A stretch of DNA of 55,622 bases from Pelomyxa schiedti (Eukaryota; Protista; Evosea), in contig JAHLWZ010000895.1 of assembly GCA_020536535.1 (NCBI GenBank), forward strand, positions 1-55,622, read 5' to 3'. The position numbers were made by a program, and so were the translations under genes. Shown in pieces: positions 4,807 to 52,381 of the stretch (positions are counted from its first letter, which is position 1; each line of letters starts with the position of its first letter). A model generated the notes under the pieces. The model had not been told where the DNA came from, did not search any database, and was given only the letters and a program-made list of their open reading frames with translations.

Positions 4807-5046
4807 ACAACTCAAAGTGAACAGCNNNNNNNNNNNNNNNNNNNNNNNNNNNNNNNNNNNNNNNNNNNNNNNNNNNNNNNNNNNNNNNNNNNNNNNNNNN
4901 NNNNNNNNNNNNNNNNNNNNNNNNNCCAGACAACAGCATTGTGCTCATGTCCTACGACCTCAATAAATGTGCGGTGAACTACTACTGCAGTGGCCCCAAT
5001 GGACTCTTCTATGCCGGCCTTGTATGAACAACTCAAAGTGAACAGC
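4705..5046. repeat. 121-bp exact direct repeat flanking a 100-N scaffold gap (probable assembly overlap)
   Basis: 4705-4825 is identical to 4926-5046 and the N run 4826-4925 lies exactly between them. Confidence 0.9.
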
Positions 5047-27767: not shown

Positions 27768-30700
27768 ATGTTCGAAGGATTGGTGTGTGAGTTGCTGACG
27801 CGGTTGCTCGGCAAATACATCGCCAACTTGAACGCGGACCAGCTATCGTTGGGAATCTGGGGAGGTGTGTGTGCTTCTCACTGCCTTTGTTTCCCAATGT
27901 GATCGTTTTTTTTTTTTTCTTTTTTTTACTTGCACTGAAAATGTGCCAATTACAGGGGATGTGGTGCTTGCGAATCTGGAATTCAAGCCAGATGCTTTGC
28001 AGGGGTTAAATTTGCCTATCAATGTTGTTAAAGGTATGTCGCTCACCAACTGATGACACTCCCGTTTGTAATTATTGCGCAAGGCATTGTTGGGAAACTT
28101 GTCCTCAAAATTCCCTGGACAGCTCTTGGTTCCCAGCCTGTGGTTGTTAATGTGGACCAAGTTTTCTTACTTCTTGGCCCAGAAGATAGATTTCAGGTAT
28201 CTGTCATGGTGCATGCTGATTGTAATTCTTAATTATCTTGGATGCAGTATGATGAAGCTGCTGAAACAAAAAAACTACTCCTTGCAAAGAAAGCTAAGCT
28301 TGACCAGTATGAAGTTATCAAGCTTCTGAAGGAAGGACAGGGTTCTTCTGAGGGCTCCGCCAAAAGTGAACAAACCTCTCTCTCTCTTTCTCTGCACCTC
28401 TGATTTTCTTCCATCATTAGACCAGAGCTTCACTGCATCTCTCATCACCAAAGTTATAGACAACCTTCAAATTGAAATAAACAAAATTCATATCCGGTAC
28501 GAAGCAACTCACCACAATGGAACGGTATGTAAACCCAATAGCTATCTGTCTTCACTCTGATTCATTCATCTGAAAGTCTTTTGCAATTGGGTTGACTGTG
28601 GATTCGGTGCAGCTGAAGTCCACAGATGAACACTGGGCACCCAGATTCATGCAATATGCTGGAAATGATTTAAGATTCAAGGTTAAACTCTGTCACTTGT
28701 CTTGGTGCATTCACAGAAACTTATTTGCAGATTGGAACAATTTCTTGCCTTTCTGCTTATATCCTTCCTGAATCACCAAGCATGCGTAACATTCCAGCAC
28801 GAGAAGTGTTGGTCCAATTAATGAACCAAGTGGGTTTTAAAAGACAAATAAATTTTCCTAATGACAGCCACTAGATTCCAACCCCTTCATCACTGGGTGT
28901 ATTAGCTCCTTTTTTTGTGATTGATCCCATCACAGCAAGTATTAAGGTGAGTGAGTATTAGGTTGCATTCTTTCTTATGTTGTGGGAAAAACAGGTTACG
29001 ATGAATTTTTCTCCTGAAATTCAGATGGACAAACCCAAAATCACTGTTGCTTGCAACATCAACCAGGTTCGGAACCATTCCCACCACCCCAATGTACATA
29101 TTTCTTCAATAGATTTCTGTCTCCATGCAAGAGTCACAGTATCACACAGCCCTTTGCTGCATTGAACTTCTCTCACAATATGTTCAATCTGTCAAAGTAC
29201 AGTTCCTTTTTCCTTCTTCAGGTTGTCTCACAATATGTGTTTTCAGTATCTCAAGTATCGGCCCCAACAGAGGCCAAATAAAACAAACCTCAAAGAATGG
29301 TGGCACTATGCAAGTAATAGCCCCCACCTTTTGCCACAGTTATTTCTTTTCTACAATAACCACCAAATAAGTGAATGTTACCCGGGAGCAAGTCAGGACT
29401 AGAATGCAAAGGACAAGCTTCCACTATGTTGTGAAAAGGTTGATGGACCAGCGGCGGTACATTGAATACTACAAAAGATCACAAGGTGTCAAGTGGTGGA
29501 CACCACTTGACAAGCAAGAACAACAGGCATACTCTGATCTAGAAGACTCTTTACCCTATGAAGACATTATTTTGTATGAACTTTGTTTCTTCTTGTTTCT
29601 AGTGTAGCTCATAAAAAAAAAAAAAAGTTATCGCAGTATTGCAACAGCTGCACTCAGAAAAGAGGCCGAAAATGCCAAAAAGAGGGAAGAGCTCATAACT
29701 GCACAGAAACAACGGGAAGCTGAGAGGAAAAAAGCAACTCAAAGTTCTTGGGGCAGTTGGTTTGGCTGGGGTAAAAAACCTGAGGTATAATAAACCTTCG
29801 TTTCTATGGCAACACACAAAGAAACCAAATTAAAAAGACTCCTGCAGTGACCTCTACCCCTGAGCCTGAGCCAGAGCAAGTTCTCCCCACAGTCGAACTT
29901 ACCAAAGAACAGTATGATCAAGTCATAAGTCTCGTAGGCTATTCTGAGTCAATTTCTAGTGTGGAGCCACCCAAAGAGGTTTCACATGTTAACCTCCTCC
30001 TACTTTTTTCCTCACTCTTCCCCCCCCAGTATGTCAAGCTTCGAGGGGCCCTGCTTGTGGGATCTCTTACATTTTCCTTGAAAGATGAAGTAACTGGACT
30101 AAACATTCTCACTGGTGTTTTTGAGCGAACCTATCTCTCAGCTCTCATTAGAACAGAAAATATTCATGTTTTTCCTTTCCTTCTTTCTTGTCTATTATTT
30201 CTAAATGGCAATATTTTTCTTCAAGGTGGAGGCTCAACTGGATAAGTACGATGTTGTGGACAACTTTACAAAGAATTCTCATTTTCCAAAAATTGTATCC
30301 AATTCTACAATTTGTGTTTGTTACATCTCAAAATACAACCACAGGTCAGTACCACCAGTACCACCTCTGGCTCGTTAAGACCTCCTCCACTTAATACCCA
30401 GCCCACTTTAAGTTCTGCTTCTTCCACAACGCAAGACAATGACCATTTTGTAAAACTGTCACTTGACCTGAAACCACTTGATGGACATGCTGACACAGCA
30501 GTTGAGGTGACAATAAACCCCATGACTTTTACTCTTACAAAGCCATTTCTTGATCGAGTTGGTAATGTTCTATTTTCTTTCCTCATATTGTAAGCCCAAA
30601 GCAGTTCAATTTTTTACTCCGAGTGAAACTCTTGATATTGCAGCCATGAGTGACCTGGCCAGTGATCAACTCAATAACCTTGTAAAAGCAACAAGGGCAC

Positions 30701-33700
30701 AACTTGAACTTGCTGTTCAACTTCATAAGACAGTCGATCTCAGAATTTTGATTGCAGTTGCGTCAGTCTCCACAAAACCTGATGCTGCAGCAACTTTTCT
30801 AATTTTTTTTTTTTTTTTTTTAAATCAAGGCACCAACAGTTTTGATTCCTCAGTTTGCTGACAGGTCAGACACTCCATTCTTAATGGTGGACTTTGGCAC
30901 TTTGGCTATTACAAGTGAGCCAAAGCATGCTGAAACAGCAGTACTTGGTGGAGAAATGTTTGTCTCCCAGAAATATTTATCCCTTTTTTTTTTTTTACAT
31001 TTAAGCCCACGCAGTGTAAACCTGGATTTTTATGACTCATACAATATACAATTGACCGCAGTAAAAATGATTCTATCCAGTAATGCAACAGATCTATCCA
31101 CTCCCACAGTGTGTTTTTTTTTACCCCTTTGAAATCTAATTTAGTTTGACAACTACCTCAGAATCGCAACATACAAGTGGTCGAGGACTTCAGTATTCTC
31201 CTCAAAGGCATGGTTTGCATTCAACCAAACGAGCTCACACTGACAACACTAATGTCAGTGTTACGAACTTCATGTCTTTTTTGCACCTCACCAAAATAAT
31301 ATAACAGTGTCACTGGCTCTCTGCCTTCCCTGACTGTAAACTTATCCCTGGAGAAATACAACCTTGCCATGGGAATGCTTGCTATGTTTTTAGAGAACTT
31401 GTTGCCAAGTGCTTCTTCAGACTCCCCCGTTAGTTTCATGTCGATCTAATTCCTATTTTTTTGTTGACAAAGACCATGCAGCCCCTTGACAACTCCAGTG
31501 CGGAGTCCAAACAGATAAATGAAATACTTCTAGTGCCTGATAACTTGCTGATAAAACACAAGTCCTTTGAAGCTTTTTTTACAATTCCTTGCCTTACCGT
31601 CAACTTATCTGACATGTGCCGGGATGGACAGCCTCCCTCACCTCTCATTGCAGTATTTTTTTTCTGGGCTTTTGTTGGTTTTTTGTTTTTATTCCTTGAA
31701 GGTTCACCTTGAAGGAATATCTGCACACTTTACAAAGCGAACATGGGACATGCATCTGGACACTAAATTGGGGAATTTAAAAGTTGAAGATTGTATTGCA
31801 AAATCACGGGGTCTGGACTTTGTGGATATGGTTAATTCAGTCCACTCTGGGCAAGAATTGTTACATATAACTTACCATCAGACAAGTCCTGTACGGCAGT
31901 GTGGTTTTTTTCTTTTTCTTTTTCTTAACTGGATAAAGGTTTCACCTGAGTATGCCAATGTAGATATCTCTCTAGAGACACACCTTGGAAATCTGTTTGC
32001 ATATTGCAATCCCGAAACTGTGTCTGCATTGATTGCTATCATTCTAGAAATGTATGCCGTCAACAACCCAATGACCTCATTCATAAGCACTTCACTCTCA
32101 AACTCTTACATAAAGTCTGAACAGCAAACCGCCTTCATTCAGATCTGCAAAGCCACCCCCACCTGAGTCACTTCCTATAGTGAAACCACCTGTTTCATAC
32201 AATAACCCTGTCATACTCACAAAAGTATGTTTCTTTGTAGCTCTTCTACCTGTTGTGTGATTTGCACAATAGTTATCTGTATCTGTCTCAACACTGGGCC
32301 TTGTTTTGGTCCTGAATAATACAAAATTTGCTGAGTTCCAAATATGTGGAATTAATTCCGACATCTGCTTGAATGAAGATACCACTCTTGGTGTCATGGT
32401 TCTTTTCTTGTGAAGTTATTTCTCCAAATCACACAGCCACAGGTCGAAATTGGTGGTGTATCAGTGGATGACTGCAATGCTACTGAAGGTTCATTTTGTC
32501 GGCATCTCATTTCCATGCAAGACTCCTCTACACCTATGATTTCCATGAACTATTCCACATTTACCACATACAAATCTCCTGGCTGGGATTCCTCCATTGG
32601 TAACTAATTTCTTCCACTCAGTTTTGTGATAACCTCTTCTAAAGATGCAAAGATCAAATGCATTCATGTTAACCTTGTTCAAGACTTCTTCATCCAACTT
32701 GTGTGAGTTTTTTTTTTTTTTTGTCAAGTTCACCTGGCCCCAGAAAATATGTTGTTCAAGGTCCCCTACTTGCACCTCTTAGGAAAGCCCAAGTTGACAA
32801 ACTTGTGGCCCAAACATACACATCTGTTTCACAAAACTTAAGTGATACTGTTATCCAGTACCCGCATAAAATCACAAGTATTTTTTTTGGTCTATTACTG
32901 AAAAGTAACATCCAATAGGAACAAAGATGGACATTCATTTAGAGGCTCCTGAGGTTATCATCCCAAGCCCAAAATCGCCTCAATCCTCTGTCCTCATTCA
33001 AATGGGGCAATTGTCACTGAAGAATTCCTTTTTGATAGAACAAACAAATTACAAAGCCAGCACAGTTCCAATTGAGTGCCTATGCCTCAATTTGGAGAAC
33101 GTCAATCTTGTTACTGTGCAAAATGGTGTACCAGTGCCTCTCTCCTCTGGAATTGGTTTCAAAGCTACTATTAATCGCGCCCTCATAGAATATGACCCAC
33201 AACTCAAAGTAGAAATAACATAAGGAACTACTCATTGTTAATGATCTCCACTTTTTCAGGTCTCCTTGATTGTTCCCAACATAGAGATAAGTGCCTCTGA
33301 AGAGCAAATAATCTTCTTGATGAATCAGTACTTAGAGGTCACAAAAACAATTGAACAAATTGTATCCCTCGCTTCACAGGCCCCATCCACCTTAGGTACG
33401 GGTAAAATATTGGAGGAAGTGTCTGAGGCAAACCCTTCTGGTAGTCAAATACTTCCCTAAGAGCAACATCGATCTCACTCCAGTTTTCAAGTGAAATTAA
33501 GTGAACCGCCACAGACAAAAGTCACCACAGCAGAAGTAAAACTAGAGCTCAAGAAATTGTCTCTTTGTCTTTCCAATAGGTTTGCAAGTAGCAGTTTTGG
33601 GGTGATTTAACAATCATAATTCAGTGGCACAAGCCCTTTGTTCAAAAGTACGTTATCTGAGTCAGTGGTCTTCCTTTCTCTTGCTGCATCCACCATGAAG

Positions 33701-36700
33701 GTACTGAGTATTTTCTTTTCTTTGCCATTTTGAGAGTCTGTTCTTCTAGTTGACAGCATCTGTCTCAAAATTAGTCATTCAAGATGAGCGACAGATTTCT
33801 GACATTCACTTTAAAGTCTCCCTATCTACACATCAATCTTTTGGCTAAGTTGTTGGCAGCACCTTTTTGATGGGATGGGAACAGAAGAACAACCCCTCCT
33901 AACATTGGACTACCTACGGGATAACAGTAGCAATTCCCAGGCTGTGTCTCTCTCCATCCAGAATCCCAAAATATTTATCCTTCCTTCAATCCTGGAAGAT
34001 ATCAAAGTACAAATATTTGGGTTTTGCGTTGTTAACCTCCCTTCAGTTATCAGCAATGAGACTTTTTCCCCACATCACAAGCACCCCAACACAATCTCCT
34101 CAGCATGTTGATCCTGTGCTGGTAACCAAGAAGGCTCCTATAACAATTGCAGTATCACTCAAAAATCCGGAAATATTTGCTGTGTTGGATGAGTATAGTC
34201 TCTCTCCCTGCTTTGGCATTGCTGGCAGTTTCAGCATTCAAGTATGTTTAGTGTAATCCTTGATGAACTGAATAGCCTCAAGTTAAAAGACACTACTGAT
34301 ATGCAAGTTCAAGGCTCAGATATCCAAGTATCTGTATTCACACCAACATCTAACATGGTAGGGATCTTCTTGGAGGTATGAGTGGCAAAACAGCTCTCAC
34401 TTTGATAACAGAAATCCCGAGAAGCTCAGCACTACATTCTGTCTCCATCATCATTAGACCTGAATGTTGTTAATACCCCAGCAAAACAACACATTAAAGT
34501 TGTCTCCCCAGCAATTGCTACCTCCCTCACTTTTGGAGACATTAAACTGGCCACCAAACTCCTCAATACATTATTGCCTCTTATAAAAATCTCAAAAAGC
34601 AGTGACAACCCATCCACTCCTCCACAAGAACCACCCAACATCCAACATGAAATCGATGAGAAGGTCTAATACTTCTTCACAATTATTCCCTAAGGCGGCA
34701 TTTATAGTTTGAACTCTTCTGCAAATATTTTACCGTCACCTTCAATGATGATACCAGGGCTGTTATTTCTCCCTTTTCTGTTCTCGATTTGAAGAGTGCA
34801 TCAGTGCATTTGTCAAATTGGTCCAGCCAAGTAGTTTAGCACCCACTACCTTCCTCTTCACTAAGTGAAACAATAGATGGAATTCAACATTTCCATGGAA
34901 CCTAGTTTTACCCTCTTTCAGGAATCTTCAGAAAAGTATGATTGCTCTTCATTTACATTTTAATGTCTAATGCACATAGCCCCTCTGTCACTGTTACTTG
35001 TCAGCTGAAGCTGTCCAAACCAGATAATACTTCCAACGGAGTTTCCTCTGAAACTCTGGCAACCTACAGTTTTCAAGCAATAAATGCCAATGCTACAATT
35101 TACCAGTCAAAATATCCTTTCATTGGCAATCTCAATGTTGGCACTTCAGTTACTCAATCTCCCAGCAGCACTGAGGTATATGTTCTCAGGCAGGGGTTGG
35201 GGAAAAAAACCCAAAACGAACAAACAAACAACAGATTTGCCTTTCAGTGCTCAACCCCACTGTTTCCATTTCCCAAGACCAGATTATATTTTTACTGAAG
35301 CAATACACTTTTGTGAATAAATTCCTTGGGACTGCCTCTGAATTATTGAAAGAAATTAGCTCTTCCAAGTTGATCATGGGAAACTCAGGTATCATTATTT
35401 TATTCTGTTTTTTGTAACAACCTGAAGATCATGTTGAGGTGCCACCTCCCTCAAACACAGCAATGAAGACCTCTGTTGATCTAGGAAACATGAAAATTCT
35501 TCTTTTACAACAGTAGGCCGCTACCAAAAATTCATGAAAATGTAATCTTGTCCAGAGAGGCAAGTAACATCTGTGAATTCCTTTTATCAAAAGCATCCGC
35601 AACTCTTAGAAGTGGTGATGACGTCACTGAGGTAGCATTTCCACACACCTTAATCTCCCCTCAAATTCTAATAGATAAATGCCTCCATTTTTCAACTGAG
35701 AGGCCTTGATAGAAGAAGTGAGACAGCCCTGAAGAATGCGGTATTCCACTCACATTTCTTCCAATAGTAACATTATTAGTGCATCTTGAAACAATCTGAG
35801 AATTGCATGACGCCACTTGCACAGCTTTCTTACAGGAAAAATCACAAGTCTTTAGCGCAATCCCTTTGTATTCAACTTGAATCACCAACAATATGCCTTC
35901 TACCTCATTTTTTGTTGACTATGAAGGTAGCTCCAAGTGGGTACAAGTTCGCCACTAACTTGCTCTTCAGGTCTACATTACTGCTCTGTTTCCCTACATT
36001 CCCAAAGCAAAACCATCTTCAAGTGATTCCCCTGTGGACCCTGTGCACACAGCCCTCACAACAAATGTTTCAATTCGCAACTTGAGCATCACCTGTGTAG
36101 GTGATGAATTGAGCACATCTCCTAGTTGTGTAACTCTTCTTGCTAGCACCAATATCGATGTGCAACAGGTTTTCCTTCATACACAACCTAAGGTAACCAT
36201 GTTGTTTAGATTTCTGAGGATTTGCAATTCACACTTGAAGCATCTGATATATCCTCTTTCATCTTCCAGTGGCCTCAAATAGTTGATGAACTTGATCCAG
36301 ATGCAGTTCTTCATTCACACACAGCAGTGACAAAGCACCAGATTCTTAAACCAACCTCCTTTTCTCTGTTGTTGAACAGAAAAACTGTAAACAGCTGTGT
36401 AAGTACTTCTATTGTAGTGGCACCTTCAGATCTGGCGGCTATGATTTCCCCTGTGGACATTAAGTTCTTCTGTGAAACTTGGAATGCCCTGAAGCCATTG
36501 ACCCAGTTACCCACAGAATCGAATGAGGATCATCAAATCCCATTACAGGAGTCTACAGAAAGGGTATCATCATGTTACCCAAAAACCTCTAACAAACAAA
36601 AAGCTGCAATTGAAATGGGGACATTCCTCAATTTCACTTTTAAATGAGTCCCTTCCCATGCTTTCTTTCAATGTTGACGAACTTTCTTTTGATGTGAGGG

Positions 36701-39700
36701 ACTGGTCCTCCAAGGTAATTTTACCTTCTTTTTTTATCCTTCCAAGGCTCATAAATATAGATCAAATTGGAAGGTGTTGCTCAGTTGAAAGCCAGCCTCT
36801 TCAGTGAAGGTAGTGCATTAGCCTATCTAAGTGCACATGTATCTAGTTCGGCATTGAAGAATGCTGATGCAATGTCTATGCAATGCAATGTGAGTAATAT
36901 GCAGCTGCTCCTCCAAGAAAATTCCTTAGAAAGGCCCATTCTCAGTCAAATGGAAGTGTGTGCAAACATTGCTCTTGGGCCAAAGCAAAAGGTTTTTTTA
37001 TTATTTTGACCACTTGACTTCCTCAACTTTGGTTTCTTAGGTGCAAGTCCAATTTTCTAGTGCAGATATTACAGTTTCTGAAAGTCAGATTGTACTCCTG
37101 TTGCAGCAGTACCTAAATGTTATGAATTTTACTGAACAATTGTCTGCTTCCTTTCCTTCAGCAGCAAGTCCGCAAGGTGCCAACAAATTTTTGTCTTTCG
37201 TTTCTGATCCAAGTTTCCAGTAGAAAAATCGTCATTGGCCACTGAAATATCATTGGAAACACCAAAACTCTCTCTCTCTCTTCTTCAAGGAAAAGATATT
37301 AAGTATGAACCACTTTCCATTTTCAAACTAAAGCTCCTGCCCCAACTCTAGGCTCTGCAACCTCAATTTTGTTGATTTTTCTGTGAGTGTTCTTCAAAGC
37401 CCAGTGTCTCTCAAGGTTATTGACTCCTTTTTTTCGGTGGCTTTTCCAACATTCATCTGCAAGGTGGAGGGACACTTGAAAGAAATAGCTCTTCTTGACA
37501 CTCGATCAATACTCACTGACCCCCATGTATGAATGTTGACTCCTACAACCAAACCTGAAGATTTGCAGAAAATTCTTCATTGTGAAAGAGGAAAAGGCAC
37601 TCCATTTGTTCAATTTGGGTATGAAAACCTTGCTACCGATGGTATCCAAAACGTTTCTTTGAACTGTAATTCCCCCTCTCTATGTGTGTATCCCACCTTT
37701 CTGTGCGCCCTCAAGGTAAAACTCTTGATTACCCAATTCCCTCCTGAACATCCATCACTAGGAAACCTTTTGCAATATTCTTCCTTACTGGGCCACACTC
37801 TCTCAGCCTCAAAAACCAACAGAGCACACTGGCACAAAACTGGGGTTTGTGTCACAATTACACCTGCACCAAATAGAAATTGCAGTCCTTGACGACACAC
37901 TAACTTCAGGAGCAGTACTTGCTGCTGAAATTCATTCCAATCTCAATGTACAAGTATTTATATATGTTGCATTTACTGAACAAGGCAAAGATGAAAAATG
38001 GAATTGAGGTATCTCTCCAGGCAGATATAAAAGCTTCATTCTCTGCCAATGGGTCCTTAATCGTGTGTGATACATCTATGACGTTCCTTTTAATGCCCTT
38101 TAGAGTGACCTTTTGGCTCCATTATCAGTTTCTTTATCTTACATCAAGAATGAGACCTGCAACAAAATTAGTACTCAGATTACTCAACTCAGGACTTCCA
38201 TCAGTCTTCCAGATGTGGTCAAATTAGCTGTGTTGGTTTCCTCACTGTCTCAACTTACCATTCCTCCACAACAACTAAATGTGAACCTGCCTCAAGTGCA
38301 ACCTTCTGACATTCAACCACTACAACTAACAGCAAACACTCCTCAAGTAGACCAAGTTGACCTATCTGAGAAGGTTCTACATTCTCCCTAACTACCAATC
38401 CTAACCCGACTTCCTCCTGTAATTTTTTTTTTTTTTTTTTTGGTTTTGAAGTTTGAATTTTTGTGCCCTCTTGTTTCTCTCGATCTTGGAGGCCTGCCAG
38501 ACCCAGTGAAATTTCATTTTGAAGCAACCACCACCACATTCACTGCCTCCAACTGGTCCAAAAAAGTAAGAACAATGGGCTGCTATGGGATTAATCCATT
38601 TTAGATCAACTTGGAAGCCTCACTGAGTGTTGATGCCAAGATTGAAATTAACAGCAGCCCGGCTCTGTGTCTTGCAATTCCCAATGTTTCCCTCTATACC
38701 CCTACTTCCAGCACTGCTGACACCAGTCTTTGCCTTCATCTGAGAGATATACTTTTATCATCAAATGTCAACAACTCTCCTGTTGTAATCACGAGCAACT
38801 TGGAATTTCTGTCAACAATGAACAAGATCTCTAATCCACCAAAGCTGGCAGTAATTCCCTGGGTAATTGAAAACAATCTCACATCTAAAAAGTTGGATTG
38901 CTGCATTTCCCAGGGAGATTTCTCTGTCACAGAAGACCAAATTATCATCGTATTGAAGCACTTCCCCTTGGTACTAGATATGATTTCGAAAACACTTAGT
39001 ACTTTGGAACATTTCTCCACCTCCAAGAAACAAGGTATCAACCAAACACTTTTTTTCCCGATTCTGATGTGATTTAGTGCCACCGAATACTGATCTGGTG
39101 CAGACAACTCGAGTCTCTTTGGACTTAAAGAAGTTAACCCTTCACTTTGGAATCACAGTGTATGCTGTCCACATGCCAAAAAAAAAAAGCTCAACCAAAC
39201 CAGCAGTGAACAAGAAAAATTAGCATTGCTAGATCTAGAGTGCCTTCAAGTAGTCCTTAATATCAACGAAGCTTCAACACAGGTGCTGAAGTGATCTCCA
39301 CCATTCTGTTCTATTTACACTAACAGGTTGAGGGGTCATGTAAGAATATATCTCTGGTTGATTCCCGTTCGCTCCTCCAATCTGCATATAAGGTTTTCAC
39401 TCTCCCCTAACATCATTTAACTTGTGCTAGTACATTCTGAATGGTTCCAGGGGAGATGGGGAACTCCTGGAGTTCCATTATTCGACAGAAAGTCAGACCA
39501 AAAACCAGAACATGGAACTTGCCATTAAATCTCCTACCCTAGTGGTCCTGCCATCTCTTTTAAACGAAGTGAAGGTAAGAATTTGGTTTGTTCCTTGCTC
39601 TAAGACCGACCCTCTCTAGTTATCTATCAGTCGTATCTTGCCTCACATTCCCACTTCAAAAACTCCTATGCAAACTGAACCTCAGACCAAAGGATGCTTT

Positions 39701-42700
39701 TCTGCCCAGATTTCTGTAGTCTCACCAGAGGTATTCATTTTTCAAAATGACAGCTCTCCAACATCTCCTGCATTACTCTTGAAAGGAGACCTCTCTTGCT
39801 CAGTATGCTTTTTTTCAGCCTTTTTTGGTACTAATGGAAAAAAAGATGAGTGAAGACACTCAATTTCATCTTAATGCTTCACGTACATCTGTGACATTGT
39901 GCAATGTGTCTTCACCTCTGGTACCTTTTTTTTTAATTACTAAAGTCCGGTGATTATTCTGTAGGACAACAATCATCATTCAAGTAGGTGTTTGATGGCA
40001 CCATCATCTTTTTCTCTATCCTACCAGAAATCTGGCCAACAGCAAGTCGTTATTGTTGGGCCCTCCTCTATCCAGCTGAGTGCCTCTGTGTCTGATGTTA
40101 ATCTCATTATGCATCTTGTCAAGGATCTGCAATCACTTACAGAAACAGGAACGTCCAATAAGCCCACAACCGACACATCGGGGGGATTGGAGAAGGTAAT
40201 ACTTCAATACTTGTTCTTTCTTTCCTTTGTTTATATCTCTGGACAGTTACTTGTGCAAAATGCTACAGCTCTCATCACTGTCCTCACTGATGGGGACCTC
40301 AAACCTATTATGGATTTAACTGCTTGTTGCAGTGCAAATGTTTCTGGGTTGTCATCGAAGGTACTACCCTGACCTGGTTGGAGAGTTGCCAATTGTTCTT
40401 TCTATCTTAGATGAAGTTTGCGGCCTCTATATCTTCTACATTCAGAGTTCATGGAATTTGTAATGATTCCTATGAAAGGTCTTTACATTACATTGATTTT
40501 AATGAGTACCAATCATTCACCCCATCAGGCAACCTCTTTTTGTTATAGTTCTAAATGATACCCGCATATGCACCACTCATACTGAAGAGGCATTGCTTAC
40601 TTCATACCGCCTTGTACTCCCAGAGGTTCAGGTATCAATTTGTGGGAACCCTATAGTTAATAGGGTGGACCTGATCACAGAGTTGTCACAGAACCAAGAC
40701 AAAACATCAGTGGGTCACTTTTTTCTTTTCCCTTCAAGGATTGATTGTGGTAGGTATCTGTTGTAGTCAACCACTTTGATGTGAAGTTCTCTGAACTTCA
40801 GTTGAAAACAATACTTCAACAATACCCAGCAATTTCCCAAGATTTTAGTTCTCTTTCCTCAGTGCTTCCTCATGACGCAACCACTGAAAAACATGGTTCA
40901 CTTTTTCAATATTCATTTCTCTTCCCTAGTCTTATTTTAGCAGAGGGGATCCCAAAAACCGTGCATAAAACCGACCTTGGGGTTAAAATAGACTCTTTTG
41001 GAATGTATACTCCAACCCCTCTCACCTTCTTGCCACTTATCTTTTCTCAAAGAGGTGTGGTTGGGTTGTGCACCTTGGAGTTAAAGAGCTTGAACACAAA
41101 GATTCAACTGGGTGCTAGTGCAATAATGGTACCTACTATTATTTGCCCTGATTAAAATCCAAATAGGTTAATGGTTCGGTGGTGCAAACACATTTCACAG
41201 ACTTGCGTGAGCCTTCACCCCTTTTCCAAGAGGTTTTTTTCTTCTCTTTCTTTTTCCCCCTAAAACTGATTAGAAGGTCCCACCATGGGGAACATCAGTA
41301 TGCAGCAAATTTCAATTCCATTTTGAGCAAGATGTGTCAACTGGTGAACAACAAGTCAGTGCTGCTTTTGCGTCACCCAAACTCTTCCTTGTACCATCAC
41401 TTATAGTTTGCCTTAAAGTACGGATTTCGTGTTAGCATCCTTTAATTGATTGCATCAACAGGAAGTAGCAACCAACATTCTGCAGTGCCTACCATCTACC
41501 CCACCTCAAGTGTCCAGTCAAAAACCAACTTCTGGGTTGCTTAAGGCCTCCATCAATGTTAGTGACCTTCTTCTTGTGGCTGTCTGCGATGAGTCTGCCA
41601 CAAATTCAGCTTGTATATCTGTAGGTGCCACTGTGGATGTGAAGGTGTGGATTTTTGCATTCCCCAACTAGGCCCCGTTTTTAAAGTACAGAGCAGGTGC
41701 AACCTTCACTTACCTCTGTAGCAGCCAGCAACCTTCACATTACTTCTTGTGAATTTCAAGCCCCTGATATGGTGTGCCAATAGTCAGCCTCTCTTCAAAA
41801 AGAAATAAATCATCATTAGGCCCACACAATCCTGGCGAATACAGGTCTCAACCTGTTGCACTCCCAAAATATTAGTCCCAATGGCTCTCCTGTTACAACT
41901 CTGACTGTAAACACATCTGAAATTGTTATATCTTTATTTTTGAGTGAAATTGGGGCTGCAATGAAGTTACTATCTGCTGCCAGCCCACTTATTCCCAAAT
42001 CAGAACACTCCCCACCAAAAGGATCCTCCTCTCTGAACGCGGAACAACAAGTACTAAATTTTACTTTGAGAGTCTCTCACAATGTGACAGATTTCCATAG
42101 ATTGTCAGAAAGCTTCCATTTGCCTCCTTGATTCCAAAGAAAGTAGCATCTCTGTTGGATCCCTCAACATAGAAAATCTAACATCATCTGTTGTCCTTTC
42201 GTCAAAGGTTAACCCTCTGTTTTTTCTCCTTTTTGTGATTGTGGTACCCAGACGAGAATATCTGCCCACTTCTCTGCTGCAGTGAAAGTCTGTGCACAAT
42301 CCTTGGATGAGAATTATTCTGTTCTTACAATATCAAATGTGACCCTAACCATGTCTGAGTCAGCAGAAAGCACTTTCCTTGCTGATTCATGCTCCTTGTC
42401 TGTATCACTTCGAAATCAAGTTCGCTGTATCCTTAAACCAACTCGCCTCGAGATGACTTTCTGCTCTGCTGAAGAAAAGATGGTTTTCTTTCTGAACTCT
42501 TTATTTTCCCTCATTTGGGAGTAGTTCCGACTTGTCATACCCACACTAGCCTGCAAGATTTCTGAAGAGCATATCCAGTTTTTGATCCAACAATACCTTT
42601 TTATTGTGGGTGTCTCTCATTCGTTGAAGAACATGATGCCAAGTCCCAACATATCCTGTACATTAAAACATGTGAATATTTTTAGTCTTATTCCACTAAA

Positions 42701-45700
42701 GCTGCAGAAGTTGTAGCTCCCACACAAGCAACCACTTTGAAAGGAATGGTAACCGTTCCAAATATTTCCCTAGAACTGTCTTTATTGAGAGATGAAACCA
42801 TGTACCTTCAAAATACTTGCTGCACTTACTTATTGGCACATGTAGAGAAGTGAGCCTCTGTGGATTGGCATTGTCTGATCTTAATATTAACATTGTGTTA
42901 GCCGACCGATTGATGGAGGTATTTCCAGGCTTGTTGTTTATCAAATAACAGGATTCTTTAGGTTGGTTGTGAGATAAGAAACCTTTCCATGGATGACAAG
43001 AGAGATCGACCCTCTTCTATTGTCAAGGCGTGTAGGGTAGCCATGGTGATTCTCATATTAAACAACCTCAGAAATTCATTTATTCACATGGGGAACCTGA
43101 CACTTCCACCTTAAGCATGTGCTACAAATCTGACTCAAGAGCAGTGAACAAGGTTAAGCAAAGGGCCACACTCACATTAAGAACAGTGACAGCCATCGCT
43201 GTTCCTTCCATTCTTCAGGAAGTCAAGGTTGTTTCTACAGTCCTTATGAAAAAAACCAACCCTCTTGCCCAGTCTCTTGTGACTAGGGTAGTGGCGTTAC
43301 TGCCTAAACAAGCAGTAGTTGAACCTATCAGCAGACAGCCTTCTATAATTTCCGTTCTCCATGCAACAGTATCCCTGGAAGATGCACACATTCTAGCAGT
43401 CTGTGATGAAGAAAACATATCTTCATCAGTTATTGGGCTTGCTGGAAGCTTGCTCTGTAAGGTCTAGTTATCTACAAGCGAAATTATTTTTGGTTAATAA
43501 AAAATAAACAGATTGCTCTAGATTCTTCTTCAAGGATTCAGGTAAAAGCACCTGTTTTTTCACTGTCTCGATTCCAACAGGTAGTCTTGTGATTCCTATG
43601 CCTTTCCCTCACTTTCTTTTTTAGCAATCAGCAAGTCTTCACCCCTTGTATCATATCATAGCACCGTTCAAGTTTTCATTCAATATTGACACTGCCCCCA
43701 CTTCAGCCACCTTCCAAACTTCAATTCCCCAGCTGGATCTGTCTTTTTCTCTTGATGATGTAAAGTTGGTTCTGCTGATCGTTCAGGCGTTCCTGCTACT
43801 TTCAACATCACAAGAACCAAGCAGGGAACGTACTTCAAAGGATACGTCACAAACTAAAGAGAAGGTACACTGTTTAGCATTTAGCTTCACCCCTAAAAAG
43901 TCCACTAGTTTGTTCTTGATTGTGATTCAATATCCCTGAAGCTTCTAGAGGCAGACCAACCCCTCATAACTGCAAAATTCAGTAGCTTGTCTGCCACAGT
44001 TTTAAACTGGTCATCGCAGGTTTACCCCTTTTCCTCGGCAGTATTGTCACTCATTCCTGTTACAGTTGGGAATTACTACTGCATTCTCTTCAACAGTGAC
44101 TTTATTTTCTGATGCAAACTTCACTACCGTACATATTGGTCATGCAGCAGTTTCAAAGAAGGAAGCTGCCACATCCCCTGACAGTACTGATGCCCTTTAT
44201 GAAAGATATACTTTGGATGTAAGTGAGGTCAACATTTCTACCACCATATGTGGTAAGCACCTATCACTTGTTGAAGGACTTGCTTTTGGTGCTCGAGTAG
44301 AGAGATCATTGCTTCAAACAGTCCCTGAGACAAATGTGTGTGTCTCTAACCATTGGTCAATTTTAAAAATGATAGGTCATTGGCCGCATTGGAAATAACT
44401 GCTGGTCTATTTCGGAGAGACAATTATTTGTGCTATTGAGCCAATACAGACGAGCAACGGACCTGTCTGCTGCTTTCACAAAGGCCCTGTCTTGGAGTAT
44501 AAATCTACAGCTATACCTGATGAACTCTAACTCTCCCTAGAACAGCCACCAACCTCTCAAACAACTCTCCCAGCTGCCACAACTTCACAGCACAAACTTG
44601 ACATCTCTTTGGATATTGAGCAGATCATTTTGAACTTAACCCAGGATTCTGAGTCAATGTATTTTTCTCAGTTCCTTCTGGAGATTTACTGTTGATAGAG
44701 AGTCGGCCCTATGCATGCTTTCTTTGTCGCAAGTGAAGATGAATCTTTTATCAACTGAAAGTACAACGGTAAAGAGCTCCTACTCCGTGGGTGTCATCTC
44801 AAGAAAAACCTACAAATAAGATCTCTGGAAGTATTCATCAGATAGAACTTGCTGACATACGCCCTCTCTCACATATACTTTTCAAAGTACAACTTAAAAT
44901 TACCCTGTGTATTTTACATACGGAAAAAAAGAACATTCTCTGGGGGAACTCTAAGTCCCTACCTTTGTTAGACTTCCATTATGAACAAACCAAACAAGGG
45001 GATCAAAGTCTTAAGCTCTTACTTCATAGTCCCACATTTTACATTTTATCTTCTGTACTTTCAGACCTCAAGGTAGTCTTTCTTCCCAGTAAAACAATTT
45101 CCAAACATAGTTCTTAGGCTGCCCTTATGCGAGTCAAGGAACGCCTATCTGGACCTTCTTCACAAGAAACTACCAATGTTACACAATTTGATATGAGATT
45201 CGATCTGGACAATTTTGATTTAGTTGCAGTCAGTGATGAAACAGTTCCAACTCCACCTTGTCTTGAGATTTGTGGACATGTGTTGAGTATCGAGGTACTG
45301 AACCCTTTTCCTTGACTATTCTTAATATTCTTTAGGTTTGCAAGTCTAATACAATTCTGAATATGGGAGCACTGTCTGCGGCTGTTTTCACACTGAATGG
45401 AACTGAAAACCAAGTATATTTTTTACTTGTTTATGTTCTTTCTCACACGTTCAGGCTGATGGAAGCAACAAGATTAACAGCCGTTTCCTGATTGATCCTT
45501 TCACTACACAAGTGAAGTATATACAAGAAATGCCTGCTATTAATCAGGTGTTATTGAGCCTGCCTGCACTGGAGCTGTTCCTCTCATATAGAGACTACTT
45601 GTTGCTCACGCACATCATTGCTACTGTTAAGCCTCTTACTGATCTCTCATCTCGCAATGCCCGCCGCGAATCAACACATGCCACTTCTGGTGAGCTAGAT

Positions 45701-48700
45701 GTCACTGCCTCACAAGTTTGTTCCTCGAAGTTATCTTCCTACCTTGACCTTTCACAAGCCGGTCCATATTGACTTGAAGTGCCCTTCACTCACAGTGACC
45801 CTTATCGACGACATAGAAGCAGTGAATTTACCTCTTTTTACTTTGAAAATTGCCTCTTTAGACATGAAACTCATTACTTCACCAGTTGTATGCAACAATT
45901 GTTCAATGAAGTCTAAAATTCGTTTAGATGGAACTCTCTTCTTCGTTAGCTCTGACAATTGATTTCTTCAACAACCAACTCATGATTTCTGAGCCCGTGA
46001 TCAATGCATGGAAATTTTCACTTCAAGTAACACAATTGAAAGTCACCAAGAGATCTAACCCTTCCACAAGATCAAGCTTGGAACTAAACCAGCAACAGTG
46101 ATTGTACTCAACTCCGATCTACCTTTGTGTCTCACAGTATCACATGGCCTTTTCACATCACTCACCAGTACATTCCTTTCGTTGGCAGCTGATATGCAAA
46201 AGAACACCAAGTTTTCATCTGAATTGTGGCACACCTCCTCAAAGCAAAACACCGTAGTTGTTTGCAATAAGCTTGGTAGCCGTCTTGCATTCAAACTTCG
46301 TGGTTCTGATCAAATTCCACTGCCATCTGGTTGTGAGAAGGCACAAACCCTTGAAACCTTGTCCCCCAATGTATCCTTGAAAATTCTGTCTGCCTCTAAT
46401 TCTCTTTAGGGGAGATATTCCAGTACAATGATCCATTCTGCTGATGCTTGGCTTGAAGACATGACCCCTATTCGAAACATCACAGTGGACAGAATAGGAT
46501 GTGAATTGCATCCTGTTCCTTCTTCAGCCCCAGTTGTCTCAGAGGTGCTTTTTTTTTTGTTCAACATGTTTATTACAGTAATGGTTAGGTCTCTTGGAAG
46601 GACGGCACTAAGTTGCTTACATTGAGGTCTCATGTGCTTGTTGCAAATTATACTGGACAGTCCATTGAAGTTTTTTTGTCGAGTGCAGATCATTCAACAC
46701 ACACGATAATGCTCATTGGTATGTTTTTCGATCTTAAGTTGTTATATCTTAAAAACAGTAGAGCCAGATGGAAAAGAACCCATTCCGTTGTCTTTGGTGT
46801 ATTCGTCATCTATCTCAGTTCGACCTTCATCAGAACACCCCTACAGTAACGCCAGAAACTTACTGGAATTATACCGCCTCTTGGTGTGTACTCTTATTTG
46901 GTTATTTGATCATTGTATTGAGTTGTCACAGGATAAGCCCGAACTTTTCACGTGTTTGTGCCAAGGGTCTCCCTCTTGGTGTGTGGCCATGAGAACAAGT
47001 CTCTCTGATAGTGAATTTCTTGGGTATAATTCTCCGGATGTCATCCCGTTTTTTTTAAAACACCTTCTCCAGTATTTGTAAGAATCCCCAAATTACTCTT
47101 GCATTCCACCCGTCATTTGTTGTCTATAACTATCTTCCATTTGATATTTCATACAGTGTGGTAAGTAATCTTAATATGTTCCACGTCTTACTTGATAAAG
47201 CTATCTGCAAGGGGTAACATTAGGAGTACTGAGAGTGCAGCTCTTTTTATCCCACGGGTTCCGAACATTGATTTCACCTTTGCCTCACATTGTATTTATT
47301 TCTTTATTGTGCTGTGAAATTGTGAAATATAACGGTTTTGAAGGTTTCATTGCTCATAGATACCAGCACTCACTTCTTCCTGGAAAGCATAAATTCAAAG
47401 TGGACCTCGGCAACAAACAGCATGTTCGTTTGCACCTTTTAACCAAGTAAAGTCTTCATCCTCTATCTTAGTGGTTCTTTCTCAAATTTTTCAGAACTGA
47501 GGACTCTATTGAAATGCACCTTTACGCACCAATGTGGATATTCAATAAAACTACCATCCCACTGTTCTGTGGGAAGAACACACAAAAAGGCACCTTTTCT
47601 CCCTTCTTGAAATTGTAGGTGTGCTCCTAATAACAGACAGATCTGGAAATATTTCTGGAACCTTCAACTTCGAAACCTGTACTTTTTTCTGGGAGAAGGG
47701 TGATGATCAAAGCTGAGAGAACTGATTGGTCAGAAGTATGTAGTTTCATTGCAGTGCAACTTTAATTTGTGGAAGTCCTTTAATATTACAGTGGGCACAT
47801 CTGGTTTCTTGGAGATTCCTAATCCTCGGGGAATTGTTTACAATATGCATATTACTGTTATTCCAGGAAAATCTAAGGTAGAGGCAGATATAAAGGCACT
47901 TTCTTACTTACTGCTAGTTTATGCGCACCAAGATAGTAGAAATAGAGCCATACTTTGAAATGGTAAATAATACAAACTCTGCACTTCTTGTGCGACAAAA
48001 AGGGACGACTGATCCCTCACGCTTTGTAATGTTACCTGCTCAAGGAAAAGCACCAATGCACTGGTATTCTGATATAAAGGTAGTACATCTTGTGGGAAGG
48101 TTGCCTCATTAGATTAAGGATGACAACTGGGGGGTCGTTCAAATCATGCAACCAGAGTTCCCTTTTTGTTCATGGTACCTCCTTTCTTTTAAAAAAAGAA
48201 ACCAGAAGTTTCTCATTTTGGGAAGGTCGGCACCTTTCAAGATTGATGAAGTCAATGACCTGGCCATTAAAACTGCACCCACTGGTTTGTCATTTCTCTT
48301 CTTTTTTCTTAAAAAAACCCTGAATGAATCCAGATTCTCTTGGAAATTGGATAGTAGTTGAAGTGGATGACAAGCGGTTGATCACAGTTTGTTTCAATCC
48401 TTGTGATCCCAAAATGCCACCTTTCTGGATCAAGAATGATACATCTCTCGATTTTACAATCTCACAAAAGGCAAGTGTTTATATCTAACGAAATGTGTGG
48501 CTAATACCGTGCAGGGTTCACCTTCACAACACCACCTCCCAGGGAAAAGCATTACCCCTTGGGCATGGGACCTACCAATGGGGGAACAGAAGTTGGTTGT
48601 CACCTCTTCCTCGGTGCCCTTTGAGCCAAGAGAATACCGTTTCAAAAAAGTCGGGGTGGCGAAAACTATCTCAGACTCTGTACGTTTCCCGTTTTGGGTG

Positions 48701-51700
48701 TTGTTCAGGACACTTCTTTGACGAAGACATTGTTTAACATTTCCTTGTCTTTCAAAAACACAAAACCAGAAAAATCGATTTCCTCCTATTTTCCCATTCG
48801 TTACTTTCACGGGGCCTATTCTTACTCTCGTTTTCACACACGACCACTCCATTCTTCCCAGTGAGAAAAGAAGAAGTTTGCTCCACAAAAAAACTGCTTC
48901 TGAGTCAGCTGTCACTCCCTCTGTATATGTGGTTAATTTCTTTTTTTTGCGTTTACAGTATATTAGTCGGAGTTACTGAATAGTTACTCTCTGAAGTTAA
49001 GTGGCGTGGGGATTTCAATTGTCACCAAACTGGGACATGTATATTCATCTTGCCTGTTCTTTGTTTAATGAAACTAACAGGAATTGCTTTACCTTTCCCT
49101 CCAAGGGATTTCGGCTACGTACTTCGAGTATGTGGAAGACGTACATATTCTTTTACAGATAAAAAATTTCCAAGTAAATTCTTCCAGCTCTTTTCCTCGG
49201 TAATACAGTGCAGCTGGACAACTATGGAAAATCCAATTTCCCGGTAATAATCCGCACTGTTCTCAAGGATCCTACAAAGCCATGGCTCCATTTCTCTGCT
49301 GTGAAATCCACGCTCTACAGTATGATTGTCTATGATTTAGAATGGATTGGACAAGACGACCAGACCCTCTAACGTATTTACTCAACAGAAAATATTGACA
49401 GTTACACATTCCTGCAAATTTTCCTGCAAGAAATGGAAGTTCTCATAGACACTCTTATAATTGGTGATGCAATACAATTTTATGAATCACTACCAATAAC
49501 TGAATTTTTTGATGCTGTTGATAAAGTGTCTAAACTCTTCACGTGTGGTTACAGCCTGGTAAAATCGCCTTTCACAAAGATTTAGGCCTCCTCTTGCATC
49601 ACCTCATGCTGTACCACCAACCGAATCACCTTTACTGGGGGACACAGTACCCGGTTCTCCTCTAAGTAGCTCTTCCAGAACTTCCACTTCGGCACTGTCA
49701 TCACCAGCCTCTACGGAACTTCCGTTGTCACCTCCCACCACACTGCGACAGATGCTACACTTCAAACTCCTACATATTAACTCCATTAGGATAACAATGT
49801 ATCTTCTCCTTATTTTGTCACCTCCTTATCTCCGTGCAGGACACTCGCTGTTAACTCTGGAAGCTTGAAACAACTGTATCTTCTTTCTGCCCTTTCTTTT
49901 TGAATGTGAGATTAAAAACGCACAAACTAAAACCAATGCAGCCATGGACCAGTCGTAGTGGTTTTGGAAACATTAGGCAGCACTTTTGCGAATATTGACA
50001 GAGCACCCCTGACTCTGAACACTCTCATGCTTCAGAATGTTGTATCTTCCCGCGAGAAACTCATGGCCATCTTCCGCAGGCATTTCACCCGCCAGATAGT
50101 GAGCGAGGTAAGTTCCCAATTTATTAATCTCTTCCCTGAAGATACATATTTCCAACCAGGTGCATACCTTGCTAGGCTCCACAGAGATACTGGGCAACCC
50201 AGTGGGACTATTTCATAATCTTGGTACTGGCTTCTATGACTTCTTCAGTGAACCAGCTCAAGGGTTGATAACATCACCCGAGGCTTTTGCAAGTGGGCTG
50301 GCTAAGGTTTCTAAAATCAGAGTTTTGGGTCTTCCTTACATGCTACAATTATTTGGTAGGGATCATCCAGTTTGGTCAAAAATTCTGTCTATGGTGCTTT
50401 TAATACTGTCAGTAAAATTACTGGAGCAATAAGTAAAGGTAAAGAAGCCCCATATTTAGCACCAGTTTACGTTTAAAAAAAAAAAGGAATGGTCAGTTTA
50501 TCTTTTGACGAATCGTATGCAAAACAAATGCAAGCCAGACACATGAAGCAGGCAAGACATGCAGGCGATGGTGTAAGAAAAGGATTTGAAGCTCTAGGCT
50601 CTGGAATGCTCCATGGCGTAACAGGGGTCGTTGTATGCTCTCCCGTTTAATTGGTAAAGAATTAAAGTACTGGTAGACAAAACCTGCTGAAGGTGCACAA
50701 AAAGATGGTGGTCTTGGGCTTGTAAAAGGAGTTGGTGTTGGCTTACTTGGGTAAGCAACTTCCCTTTCTGAACACGAATTCGTTTTTCGTTTACTCCAAC
50801 TTACAACAACAACCTAGGCTGGCAGCTAAACCTGCTGCCGGTGTGTTTGAGTTGTATTCAAAGGTAGAGCCAACTTGTATGGAACTAACTAATAAATCAA
50901 TAGACGAGTGAAGGAATAAAAAACACTACAGTGTCTGGTGAAGTTGCCCCACAGCGTGTTAGACTCGAACCCCAAGAGGTAAAACTGTTAATTAATCTTT
51001 TTTCCAACATACAAACAAAACAAAAGGAGGCTATAGTAGGTCAAAGTCTCATGGAGAAATACCTTGGCAATAAAAGGCGGAAGATCTTTAGAAAGACAGA
51101 AGAAAGTTATGTGTTACACAAAAGTGTGGATTCCAACAACAAAATTGTCATGCTTACTACAGCGAGTGTTGTGGTATTTGACATGGCAAGTGGTGTGACA
51201 CCACTTGCCATGACCTATCTAGGTACATCACCTTCTTCCCAGCCCCGCAGTGTGGCAATAAACTAACTGCCTACTCCAAAAAAGACCTCATATCTTGCGA
51301 GACAAGTAACGACAGCATAACGCTGGTCTTCAAGAATGCCGAGGTAAGTCTACCATGCGACTCCCAAACGTCCGCCTTGCTCTTCGCCAAAATCGGCCTG
51401 TGGGCAAGGCTCTCTTTCCCCGAGGACAACCTCGCCTCATCGTCCAGCTCGGTCCTGCCAAAGTCCCCAGAGACGGCCTCGCCGTCACCCACGCCACACC
51501 GCTCAGCTTCCTTCGCCTCCGCATCACCCGCATCACACCGCTCAGCTTCCTTCACCTCCACCTCCACCTCACCCACATCCACAGCACCGGCAACAACAGC
51601 TGCATCCTCGGCATCATCAACGTCAACGTCAGCATCAGCATCCCCATCGGTATCCCCATCACCCACAGAGTCACACTCCTCACCTTTTGGCTTGAGAGGA

Positions 51701-51742
51701 AAACTCTCTCGCTTACGTCACCCTGGAAAAGACAAGGATTAA
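27768..51742 (+). CDS. VPS13: Giant VPS13 bridge-like lipid transfer protein (roughly 140 introns, hand estimate 5,500-6,000 aa)
   Basis: Chorein_N MFEGLVCELLTRLLGKYIANLNADQLSLGIWGGDVVLANL and KVIDNLQIEINKIHIRYE. Six VAB-type repeats at ~46220-48900 (e.g. YAPMWIFNKT, PYFEMVNNT, PPFWIKNDT...PWAWD). C-terminal FANIDRAPLTL, ILGNPVGLFHNLGTGFYDFFSEPAQG, ATG2_C Gly-rich helices, a PH-like region and a Ser/Thr tail; stop 51740-51742. Confidence 0.95.
32920..45890 (+). repeat. Seven diverged ~1.85 kb intragenic tandem units within VPS13
   Basis: Recurrent peptide motifs with identically placed phase-0 introns. The PS-hydrophobic-K helix is followed by donors at 34007, 35927, 37716, 39575, 41418, 43228 and 45073. 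The NWSSQ/DWSSK-type motif is followed by donors at 34831, 36715, 38566, 40361, 42208, 44020 and, divergently, 45888. Confidence 0.88.
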
Positions 51743-52381
51743 CCTCGTTTATCCTTAACAGAGAACAACAAAAAAGAACTCTTTATTGTCCCAACCTTTC
51801 TTGGAGGCGTTTTTTTCGTGTTTTGTGCTGAAGGAGGTGTTGGTCCTCATTAGGGTTTATCATGTATTAGCACTCGTCCCATTGGAAGGTTATGTGTGAT
51901 ACGCTCTGTCAAGAAGAATTATTTTTGTTAGTATTCCTATTTACAATGTATCTGCGTTGTAACGGCGGTGGCCATTAGAATGAACGCCCTGACCGTTCCA
52001 GTGAGTGCCTGATCTGGACCAAGTTATGTTCCGAGAAGAAGCGAGATGAAGTTATGAACTTGCTCTCTGACACATGGGCTACCCAGCTCTTCAGAAACAA
52101 GTCAGGTACTGATTAACCTCCCATGCACGAAATCCTCCACATCCACCTCACCCACATCCACAGCAGCAACTGTATCCTCATCAAACGAACCAGCGCTAAA
52201 ATGTTTTCGTGTCACAAGCTTGCTTATTTAGGCTTTCTGGGTGAAACGGGGTCCAAACGCATTGTTTTACTTACAACTACGTAGTTGCAGTAACTTTGAA
52301 AGAGTAATTTTGTTATTCTCCCAATTCTGTACACTATGCACGTGCCAATGAGAATTTTAGTTGCTACTGTTGGGTGCTTGG

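Follow-up and report, generated by a model that had tools for sequence, protein, structure and literature searches.

A sevenfold tandem repeat within a VPS13 gene of Pelomyxa schiedti and the extra-long lipid-transfer rod that it may encode

Does a VPS13 gene that carries the same three helix motifs seven times encode a longer lipid bridge, and how would such a gene have come about? The question is raised by a 55,622-nucleotide (nt) stretch of DNA from the amoeba Pelomyxa schiedti (GenBank assembly GCA_020536535.1, contig JAHLWZ010000895.1, positions 1 to 55,622; hereafter the window). Here the original prediction, made from the sequence letters, had placed a VPS13 protein with a sevenfold-expanded block of three repeating beta-groove (RBG) domains. 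All 21 copies of the motifs (helices A, B and C) are found in translations of the plus strand, and the helix A positions agree exactly with those predicted. The window contains a single VPS13 gene that is transcribed and spliced. Its product is probably a continuous, working, extra-long lipid bridge of the VPS13A/C type, its rod lengthened by old tandem duplications within the gene (features are collected in Table 1).

The splice model was trained on 20 RNA-confirmed introns, of which it recovered 18-19, and was then curated by hand; an earlier version with 214 introns had over-called and was superseded by the RNA-trained one. The model has 129 GT-AG and 5 GC-AG introns with a median length of 44.5 nt, and the check for premature stops that came with the original prediction found none in its 5,882 amino acids (aa). 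Single-cell RNA-seq contigs on positions 37000-42990 define 20 GT-AG introns of 38-78 nt. Spliced contigs cross three unit-unit junctions in agreement with the model: X2 record 7, in consecutive pieces from 38104 to 39032; X1 record 6, in consecutive pieces from 41819 to beyond 42900; and X1 record 5, which by depth arithmetic covers 40299-40814. A fourth junction is covered in part, a loose RNA end at 37039 reading the end of the preceding exon. Intron 39393-39430 is retained in X2 record 8 and spliced in X1 and X3. The first ~400 letters of X2 record 7 do not map to 37000-42990 and join the rest near 37928; because the join falls mid-exon and not at a splice site, the start of this contig is probably a library or assembly chimera.

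The seven units, R1 to R7, were aligned one against another, in place of a BLAST self-search of the protein, which gave no off-diagonals, probably because they were masked by the main diagonal. Each of the 21 possible pairings gave an alignment of 290-430 aa, at Smith-Waterman z scores of 13-34 against shuffled sequences and local identities of 23-29%, bearing out the self-similarity that had been predicted. Control stretches of equal length from the N- and C-terminal parts gave z scores of at most 3.6 against the units. Helix A recurs at intervals of 1972, 1806, 1852, 1861, 1771 and 1851 nt in the DNA and 491, 474, 462, 454, 441 and 469 aa in the protein; the predicted repeat is thus real, but its unit averages ~465 aa and not the ~450 aa first given. 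An averaged profile of the seven units keeps 17 segments with alternating hydrophobic residues, while most of the repeat exons, being short and divergent, have no Pfam match.

Each unit has 9-11 introns, and 55 of the 71 in the repeat region are in phase 0. Position and phase are shared in 141 of 214 between-unit comparisons, where chance gives 12.5 +/- 3.4 with a maximum of 28 in 2000 randomisations. Since just one of the 71 introns was added by analogy, the circularity of this test is small. No similarity between the seven units is left at the DNA level. Shared introns together with erased DNA similarity therefore point to old duplications within the gene and not to an assembly error. To judge from these sequence comparisons, genomic DNA was duplicated in tandem after the introns were already present. 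The tree of the seven units does not resolve the order in which they were duplicated.

Which part of VPS13 was duplicated? The original prediction had called the unit a three-RBG super-repeat and likened it to the duplicated block of VPS13C. A three-helix block present seven times is confirmed; a triplet of the VPS13C type, RBG5-7, is not, as the units find no match in the RBG1-6 part (z at most 3.6) and the block maps from RBG7 to RBG10. Exon 32919-33208 matches human VPS13C (9yqp_B) twice, at both copies of one motif (1241 and 1756), and we take it to be RBG7 as numbered by Levine (2022). With RBG7 and RBG10 profiles that were built without the amoeba protein, a full RBG7 is matched once, where the array starts, and a full RBG10 once, where it ends, while the first half of RBG10 is matched at five of the six junctions. 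In a profile-profile alignment, columns 2-53 of the six junction domains pair with RBG10 positions 5-56 (E 2.9e-5) and their columns 66-147 with RBG7 positions 30-124 (E 6.7e-5). A control model of fungal RBG7-10, with five strands per domain, maps these ranges to RBG10 strands 1-3 and to RBG7 strands 2-5 plus the helix. By these alignments and models, the repeated block begins at RBG7 strand 2, ends at RBG10 strand 3 and leaves six hybrid domains that look seven-stranded. Joining RBG10 strands 1-3 to RBG7 strands 2-5 would give seven strands per hybrid and therefore 17 per unit, in agreement with the 17 hydrophobic segments. One of the hybrids, J3, is covered by RNA contig X2 record 7.

That these domains form an RBG rod is supported by homology to the canonical RBG7-RBG10, by the strand pattern and by the fold of a junction fragment, which matches Vps13 and ATG2A. 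Counting RBG1-7, six sets of RBG8, RBG9 and hybrid, then RBG8-10 and, beyond the VAB region, RBG11-12 gives 30 modules, as had been predicted (about 30). The strands number 56 + 6 x 17, or about 158, compared with 56 in VPS13A and 71 in VPS13C. At 3.9-4.2 Å per strand, a scale derived from published rod lengths, we infer a rod of 60-67 nm, against the usual 22-30 nm. The longer rod of the original prediction is upheld, but its factor of ~2.5 becomes ~2.8 relative to a 12-RBG VPS13 by strand count. Published values include ~300 Å for VPS13C (PMC13430412), ~22 nm for the 12 RBGs of PfVPS13L1 (PMC13036008) and a suggested length above 75 nm for 188 strands (PMC7613979).

We propose that a first duplication fused RBG10 to RBG7 within an exon, which would have produced the seven-stranded hybrid, and that the resulting unit of 17 strands (hybrid, RBG8, RBG9) later multiplied into the six extra copies. 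Because an odd number of strands preserves the direction of the meander, the sheet could continue across each hybrid, and the product would have one hydrophobic groove of ~158 strands over its 60-67 nm. In VPS13 proteins the Chorein_N end lies at the donor membrane, the opposite end with its VAB, ATG2_C and PH parts at the acceptor, and lipids travel along the groove. The amoeba protein, placed in the same way, would move bulk lipid over a gap 2-3 times wider than an ordinary VPS13 spans; alternatively, the rod would lie obliquely in a narrower gap.

Several observations weigh against a continuous bridge of this length. The fold prediction covers one junction piece of 143 aa (38605-39033, one in-frame intron included), which is smaller than a unit or a whole hybrid. 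In favour of the bridge, this piece folds as a sheet plus a helix (predicted local distance difference test, pLDDT, 75.8), with Vps13 6CBC (Foldseek probability 0.99, E 0.054) and ATG2A (Z 7.3) as its best structural matches. However, the strand derived from RBG10 is short in the model and its confidence low (pLDDT 53-57), VPS13 homologues were present in the folding alignment and the fold-search scores are weak, and for these reasons the seven-stranded fold is to be taken as a prediction. For three introns of the gene model, the position was taken from comparison with the other units or with VPS13 motifs and not from RNA. The RNA coverage is limited to 37-43 kb and consists of short contigs from a single study, none of which covers the whole gene. 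Finally, a motif scan of the model did not find the FFAT motif directly before RBG5; its sole FFAT-like match lies at 49499-49522 (aa 5330), near RBG11, and anchoring to the endoplasmic reticulum may therefore differ from that of the usual VPS13. Genes for MSP-domain (VAP-like) proteins occur in the genome.

In a competing account, the extra units fold as RBGs but the groove is bent or broken at the seven-stranded hybrids, so that the protein would act as a flexible tether or lipid reservoir of near-normal reach. The hybrid has two strands more than a standard RBG, its first retained strand is modelled at low confidence, and the twist of such rods is a known source of error in models of the AlphaFold type (PMC7613979). 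Nevertheless, seven-stranded RBGs have been reported within VPS13X and Tweek (PMC7613979), and the alternating hydrophobic pattern is retained in all six hybrids despite divergence to 18-25% identity, which makes an interrupted groove unlikely.

The other VPS13 genes of the amoeba provide a comparison. The genome searched (52,367,397 bases in 5,337 contigs, a single-cell assembly) holds at least six further VPS13 loci, and the expansion is present in none of those examined. A genome-wide search with the helix-B profile found seven copies at the expanded gene and one in paralogue C842. This paralogue (also on scaffold C862) carries the unit just once (85 bits), 7 of the 11 introns in that copy match those of the repeats, and its best alignment begins at R7 and continues from there; the proposed comparison of unit number thus gives one against seven. 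The C842 and C862 scaffolds are identical across the 3,396 bases compared, as a result of either redundant assembly or a very recent duplication. Three more paralogues (C682:61005-79681, C177:38700-54700 and C951:22010-7799) encode ~4,000-5,000 aa with far fewer introns and without the tandem repeat, according to rough, uncurated models whose 3' ends are unsure.

The retention of these loci, unexpanded where examined, and the gain and loss of RBGs during evolution (PMC7613979) would be compatible with a rod that is long and continuous but non-adaptive, a tolerated expansion doing the same job as the normal paralogue at ordinary contacts. This, too, is improbable: the additional ~2,800 residues and ~60 introns have stayed in frame and under structural constraint for so long that all DNA similarity has been lost. 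As for what a continuous long bridge might do, we suggest tentatively, as something possible rather than expected, that it is a ~65 nm conduit serving a wide gap particular to this symbiont-bearing anaerobic amoeba, with the single-unit paralogue working at ordinary contacts. P. schiedti carries prokaryotic endosymbionts (PMC8887013); no observation here connects the expanded VPS13 to them.

It is very improbable that the gene yields mostly shorter products, through skipping of whole units or as two transcripts. The predominance of phase 0 introns in the array means that skipping a whole unit would preserve the frame; a full-length transcript is not among the RNA contigs; and X2 record 7 has its ~400 letters that do not map to 37000-42990. 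Yet that part is joined mid-exon, all of the RNA joints listed are single short introns with no exon skip, and the gene has one Chorein_N and one set of C-terminal domains. The introns, at 35-90 nt, are of a size that favours intron definition. An assembly artefact, which a single-cell assembly with a paralogue on two identical scaffolds might bring to mind, is already largely refuted, in that the units lack DNA similarity whereas an assembly error would yield near-identical copies, and a single 33-kb DNA contig (possibly from the source run of the assembly) covers 37000-42990 while RNA from separate runs crosses the junctions.

Outside the array the protein keeps the domain order of a canonical VPS13. 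Without the six extra units it would have 3,090 aa and is collinear with canonical VPS13 (a 3,200-aa fungal protein), and exon-level Pfam matches follow the order expected for the family: VPS13_N, VPS13_M, VAB and VPS13_C. Together with the collinear alignment, these matches support the intact Chorein_N, VAB, ATG2_C and PH ends that had been predicted. VPS13_N is matched at profile positions 1-32 (E 2.9e-12), 60-95 (E 6.8e-11) and 340-401, and its summed score lies above the cut-off in the genome search, showing that the N-terminal Chorein_N is present. The VAB region lies between RBG10 and RBG11, collinear with the paralogues and fungal VPS13, and contains two exon matches to VPS13_VAB (PF25036), both below the cut-off but in the expected order: 64-101 (E 0.011), then 407-450 (E 0.0014). 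Over 244 aa, the ATG2_C-type region shares 43% identity with fungal VPS13, and in a metagenomic relative the region homologous to it retrieves annotated VPS13 proteins. Serine and threonine make up 37% of the C-terminal tail. A short piece of this Ser/Thr-rich stretch (51400-51739) recurs at 52120-52200, ~600 bases downstream and past the stop codon.

Table 1. Features of the expanded VPS13 gene, in coordinates of the window.
Feature	Position	Strand	Basis
Whole VPS13 gene, ATG to TAA	27768..51742	+	Splice model: 135 exons, 134 introns, 5,882 aa
Chorein_N cap (RBG1), RBG2 and subsequent helices	27768..29573	+	Pfam VPS13_N exon matches
Helical linker and RBG3-RBG6, single copy	29628..32877	+	Collinear with fungal VPS13; numbering inferred
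Intact RBG7 with helix A copy 1	32919..33440	+	Pfam VPS13_M 144-206; RBG7 profile
Repeat R1, RBG7 strand 2 to RBG10 strand 3, 502 aa	32984..34980	+	Alignment, introns
Repeat R2, 478 aa	34981..36808	+	Alignment, introns
Repeat R3, 458 aa	36809..38655	+	Alignment, introns; spliced RNA in part
Repeat R4, 459 aa	38656..40529	+	Alignment, introns; spliced RNA
Repeat R5, 443 aa	40530..42308	+	Alignment, introns; spliced RNA
Repeat R6, 453 aa	42309..44113	+	Alignment, introns; spliced RNA up to 42990
Repeat R7, 475 aa, continuing into intact RBG10	44114..45969	+	Alignment; Pfam VPS13_M 575-630, 690-721
Predicted hybrid junction domain J3	38452..38983	+	RBG10 strands 1-3, RBG7 strands 2-5 and helix A
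Five other predicted hybrid junction domains	starts 34708, 36604, 40247, 42091, 43909	+	Profile-profile alignment
Intact RBG10	45759..46200	+	Sole full-length match to RBG10 profile, 34.8 bits
VAB adaptor-binding repeats, limits approximate	46240..48860	+	Pfam exon matches; collinear with paralogues
RBG11 and RBG12, limits approximate	48967..50107	+	Collinear with paralogues
ATG2_C-type helical region	50160..50978	+	45-67% identity to same exon in paralogues
C-terminal PH domain, then Ser/Thr-rich tail	51027..51742	+	VPS13_C (PF25037), E 0.0025, below cut-off

The gene can be set against VPS13 proteins already described. With the canonical 12-RBG form (yeast Vps13, human VPS13A and the C842/C862 paralogue) it has in common the order Chorein_N, RBG2-10, VAB, RBG11-12, ATG2_C and PH; it differs in its six extra 17-strand units, in its length (5,882 aa compared with ~3,100-3,300) and in lacking the FFAT motif before RBG5. 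Human VPS13C and VPS13D (15 RBGs) likewise owe their greater length to an internal duplication, whose period is three RBGs, ~500 aa (PMC7613979). However, theirs duplicated RBG5-7 once (PMC7613979), whereas the amoeba block extends from inside RBG7 to inside RBG10 and is present in seven copies, for a predicted rod ~2.2 times that of VPS13C. VPS13X and Tweek/BLTP1 also have RBG domains with seven strands, but as single domains; the amoeba protein appears from its sequence to have six seven-strand-like domains for which both parent domains can be identified.

Long VPS13 proteins are known from other protists, including Chlamydomonas (7,192 aa), Plasmodium (9,307 aa) and Toxoplasma (13,455 aa) (PMC7613979). 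For Toxoplasma, Levine (2022) suggested ~38 RBGs and a groove longer than 75 nm, from a count of predicted strands (PMC7613979); this earlier suggestion lowers the novelty of the amoeba gene. The Toxoplasma estimate occupies one sentence, with data not shown and the repeat unit undefined (PMC7613979), whereas in the amoeba the repeat unit is explicitly defined, as are its breakpoints and its intron signature. The amoeba is also most likely free-living. PfVPS13L1 has 5,988 aa yet 12 RBGs, so length alone can mislead; a very long VPS13 may owe its size to loops. An extra-long VPS13 has thus already been proposed, and what is new here is a defined sevenfold repeat with hybrid breakpoints, not a new principle.

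In the literature we found no description of a sevenfold tandem VPS13 array or of an RBG10/RBG7 hybrid. Among ~20 other VPS13-like proteins (3,200-6,850 aa), including those of Entamoeba dispar (3,375 aa) and Chlamydomonas eustigma (6,778 aa), none had a comparable tandem repeat; the Toxoplasma and Plasmodium proteins were not reached, the sample is small and the homologue searches were shallow, so that this does not establish uniqueness. A profile of the seven helix-B exons retrieved five unrelated proteins from 1.84 billion representatives and did not return the amoeba VPS13 itself, nor was this protein returned by three homologue searches seeded with long metagenomic VPS13s. Sequence searches of the PDB with the helix-B and helix-C profiles gave no relevant match.

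The relation between RBG number and the width of contact sites has been stated to be unstudied (Levine 2022, PMC7613979). A well-defined natural long VPS13, with a modular 17-strand unit and a single-unit sibling in the same genome, makes this question testable. If borne out, a ~65 nm conduit at an unusually wide gap, with the single-unit paralogue at ordinary contacts, would be direct evidence that contact width is measured out by RBG number and that lipid bridges can function at lengths well above 30 nm. The gene also points to a second route to the lengthening of bridges, with a breakpoint unlike that of VPS13C and VPS13D, and suggests how seven-stranded RBG domains may originate.

Upstream of the VPS13 gene in the window, a GC-rich gene with a Pro-rich start, for which no Pfam match was found, runs on the minus strand from 27543. 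Since the two genes start ~225 bases apart and in opposite directions, they probably share a short promoter region. A scaffold gap of 100 N bases (4826-4925) lies far upstream, followed by an open frame of 444 aa (5752-7083) with a weak Pfam match to intermediate-filament (coiled-coil) proteins (E 0.005). Positions 18301-21603 hold a Roco-type gene with Roc GTPase, COR-A, COR-B and kinase domains, as recognized by Pfam.

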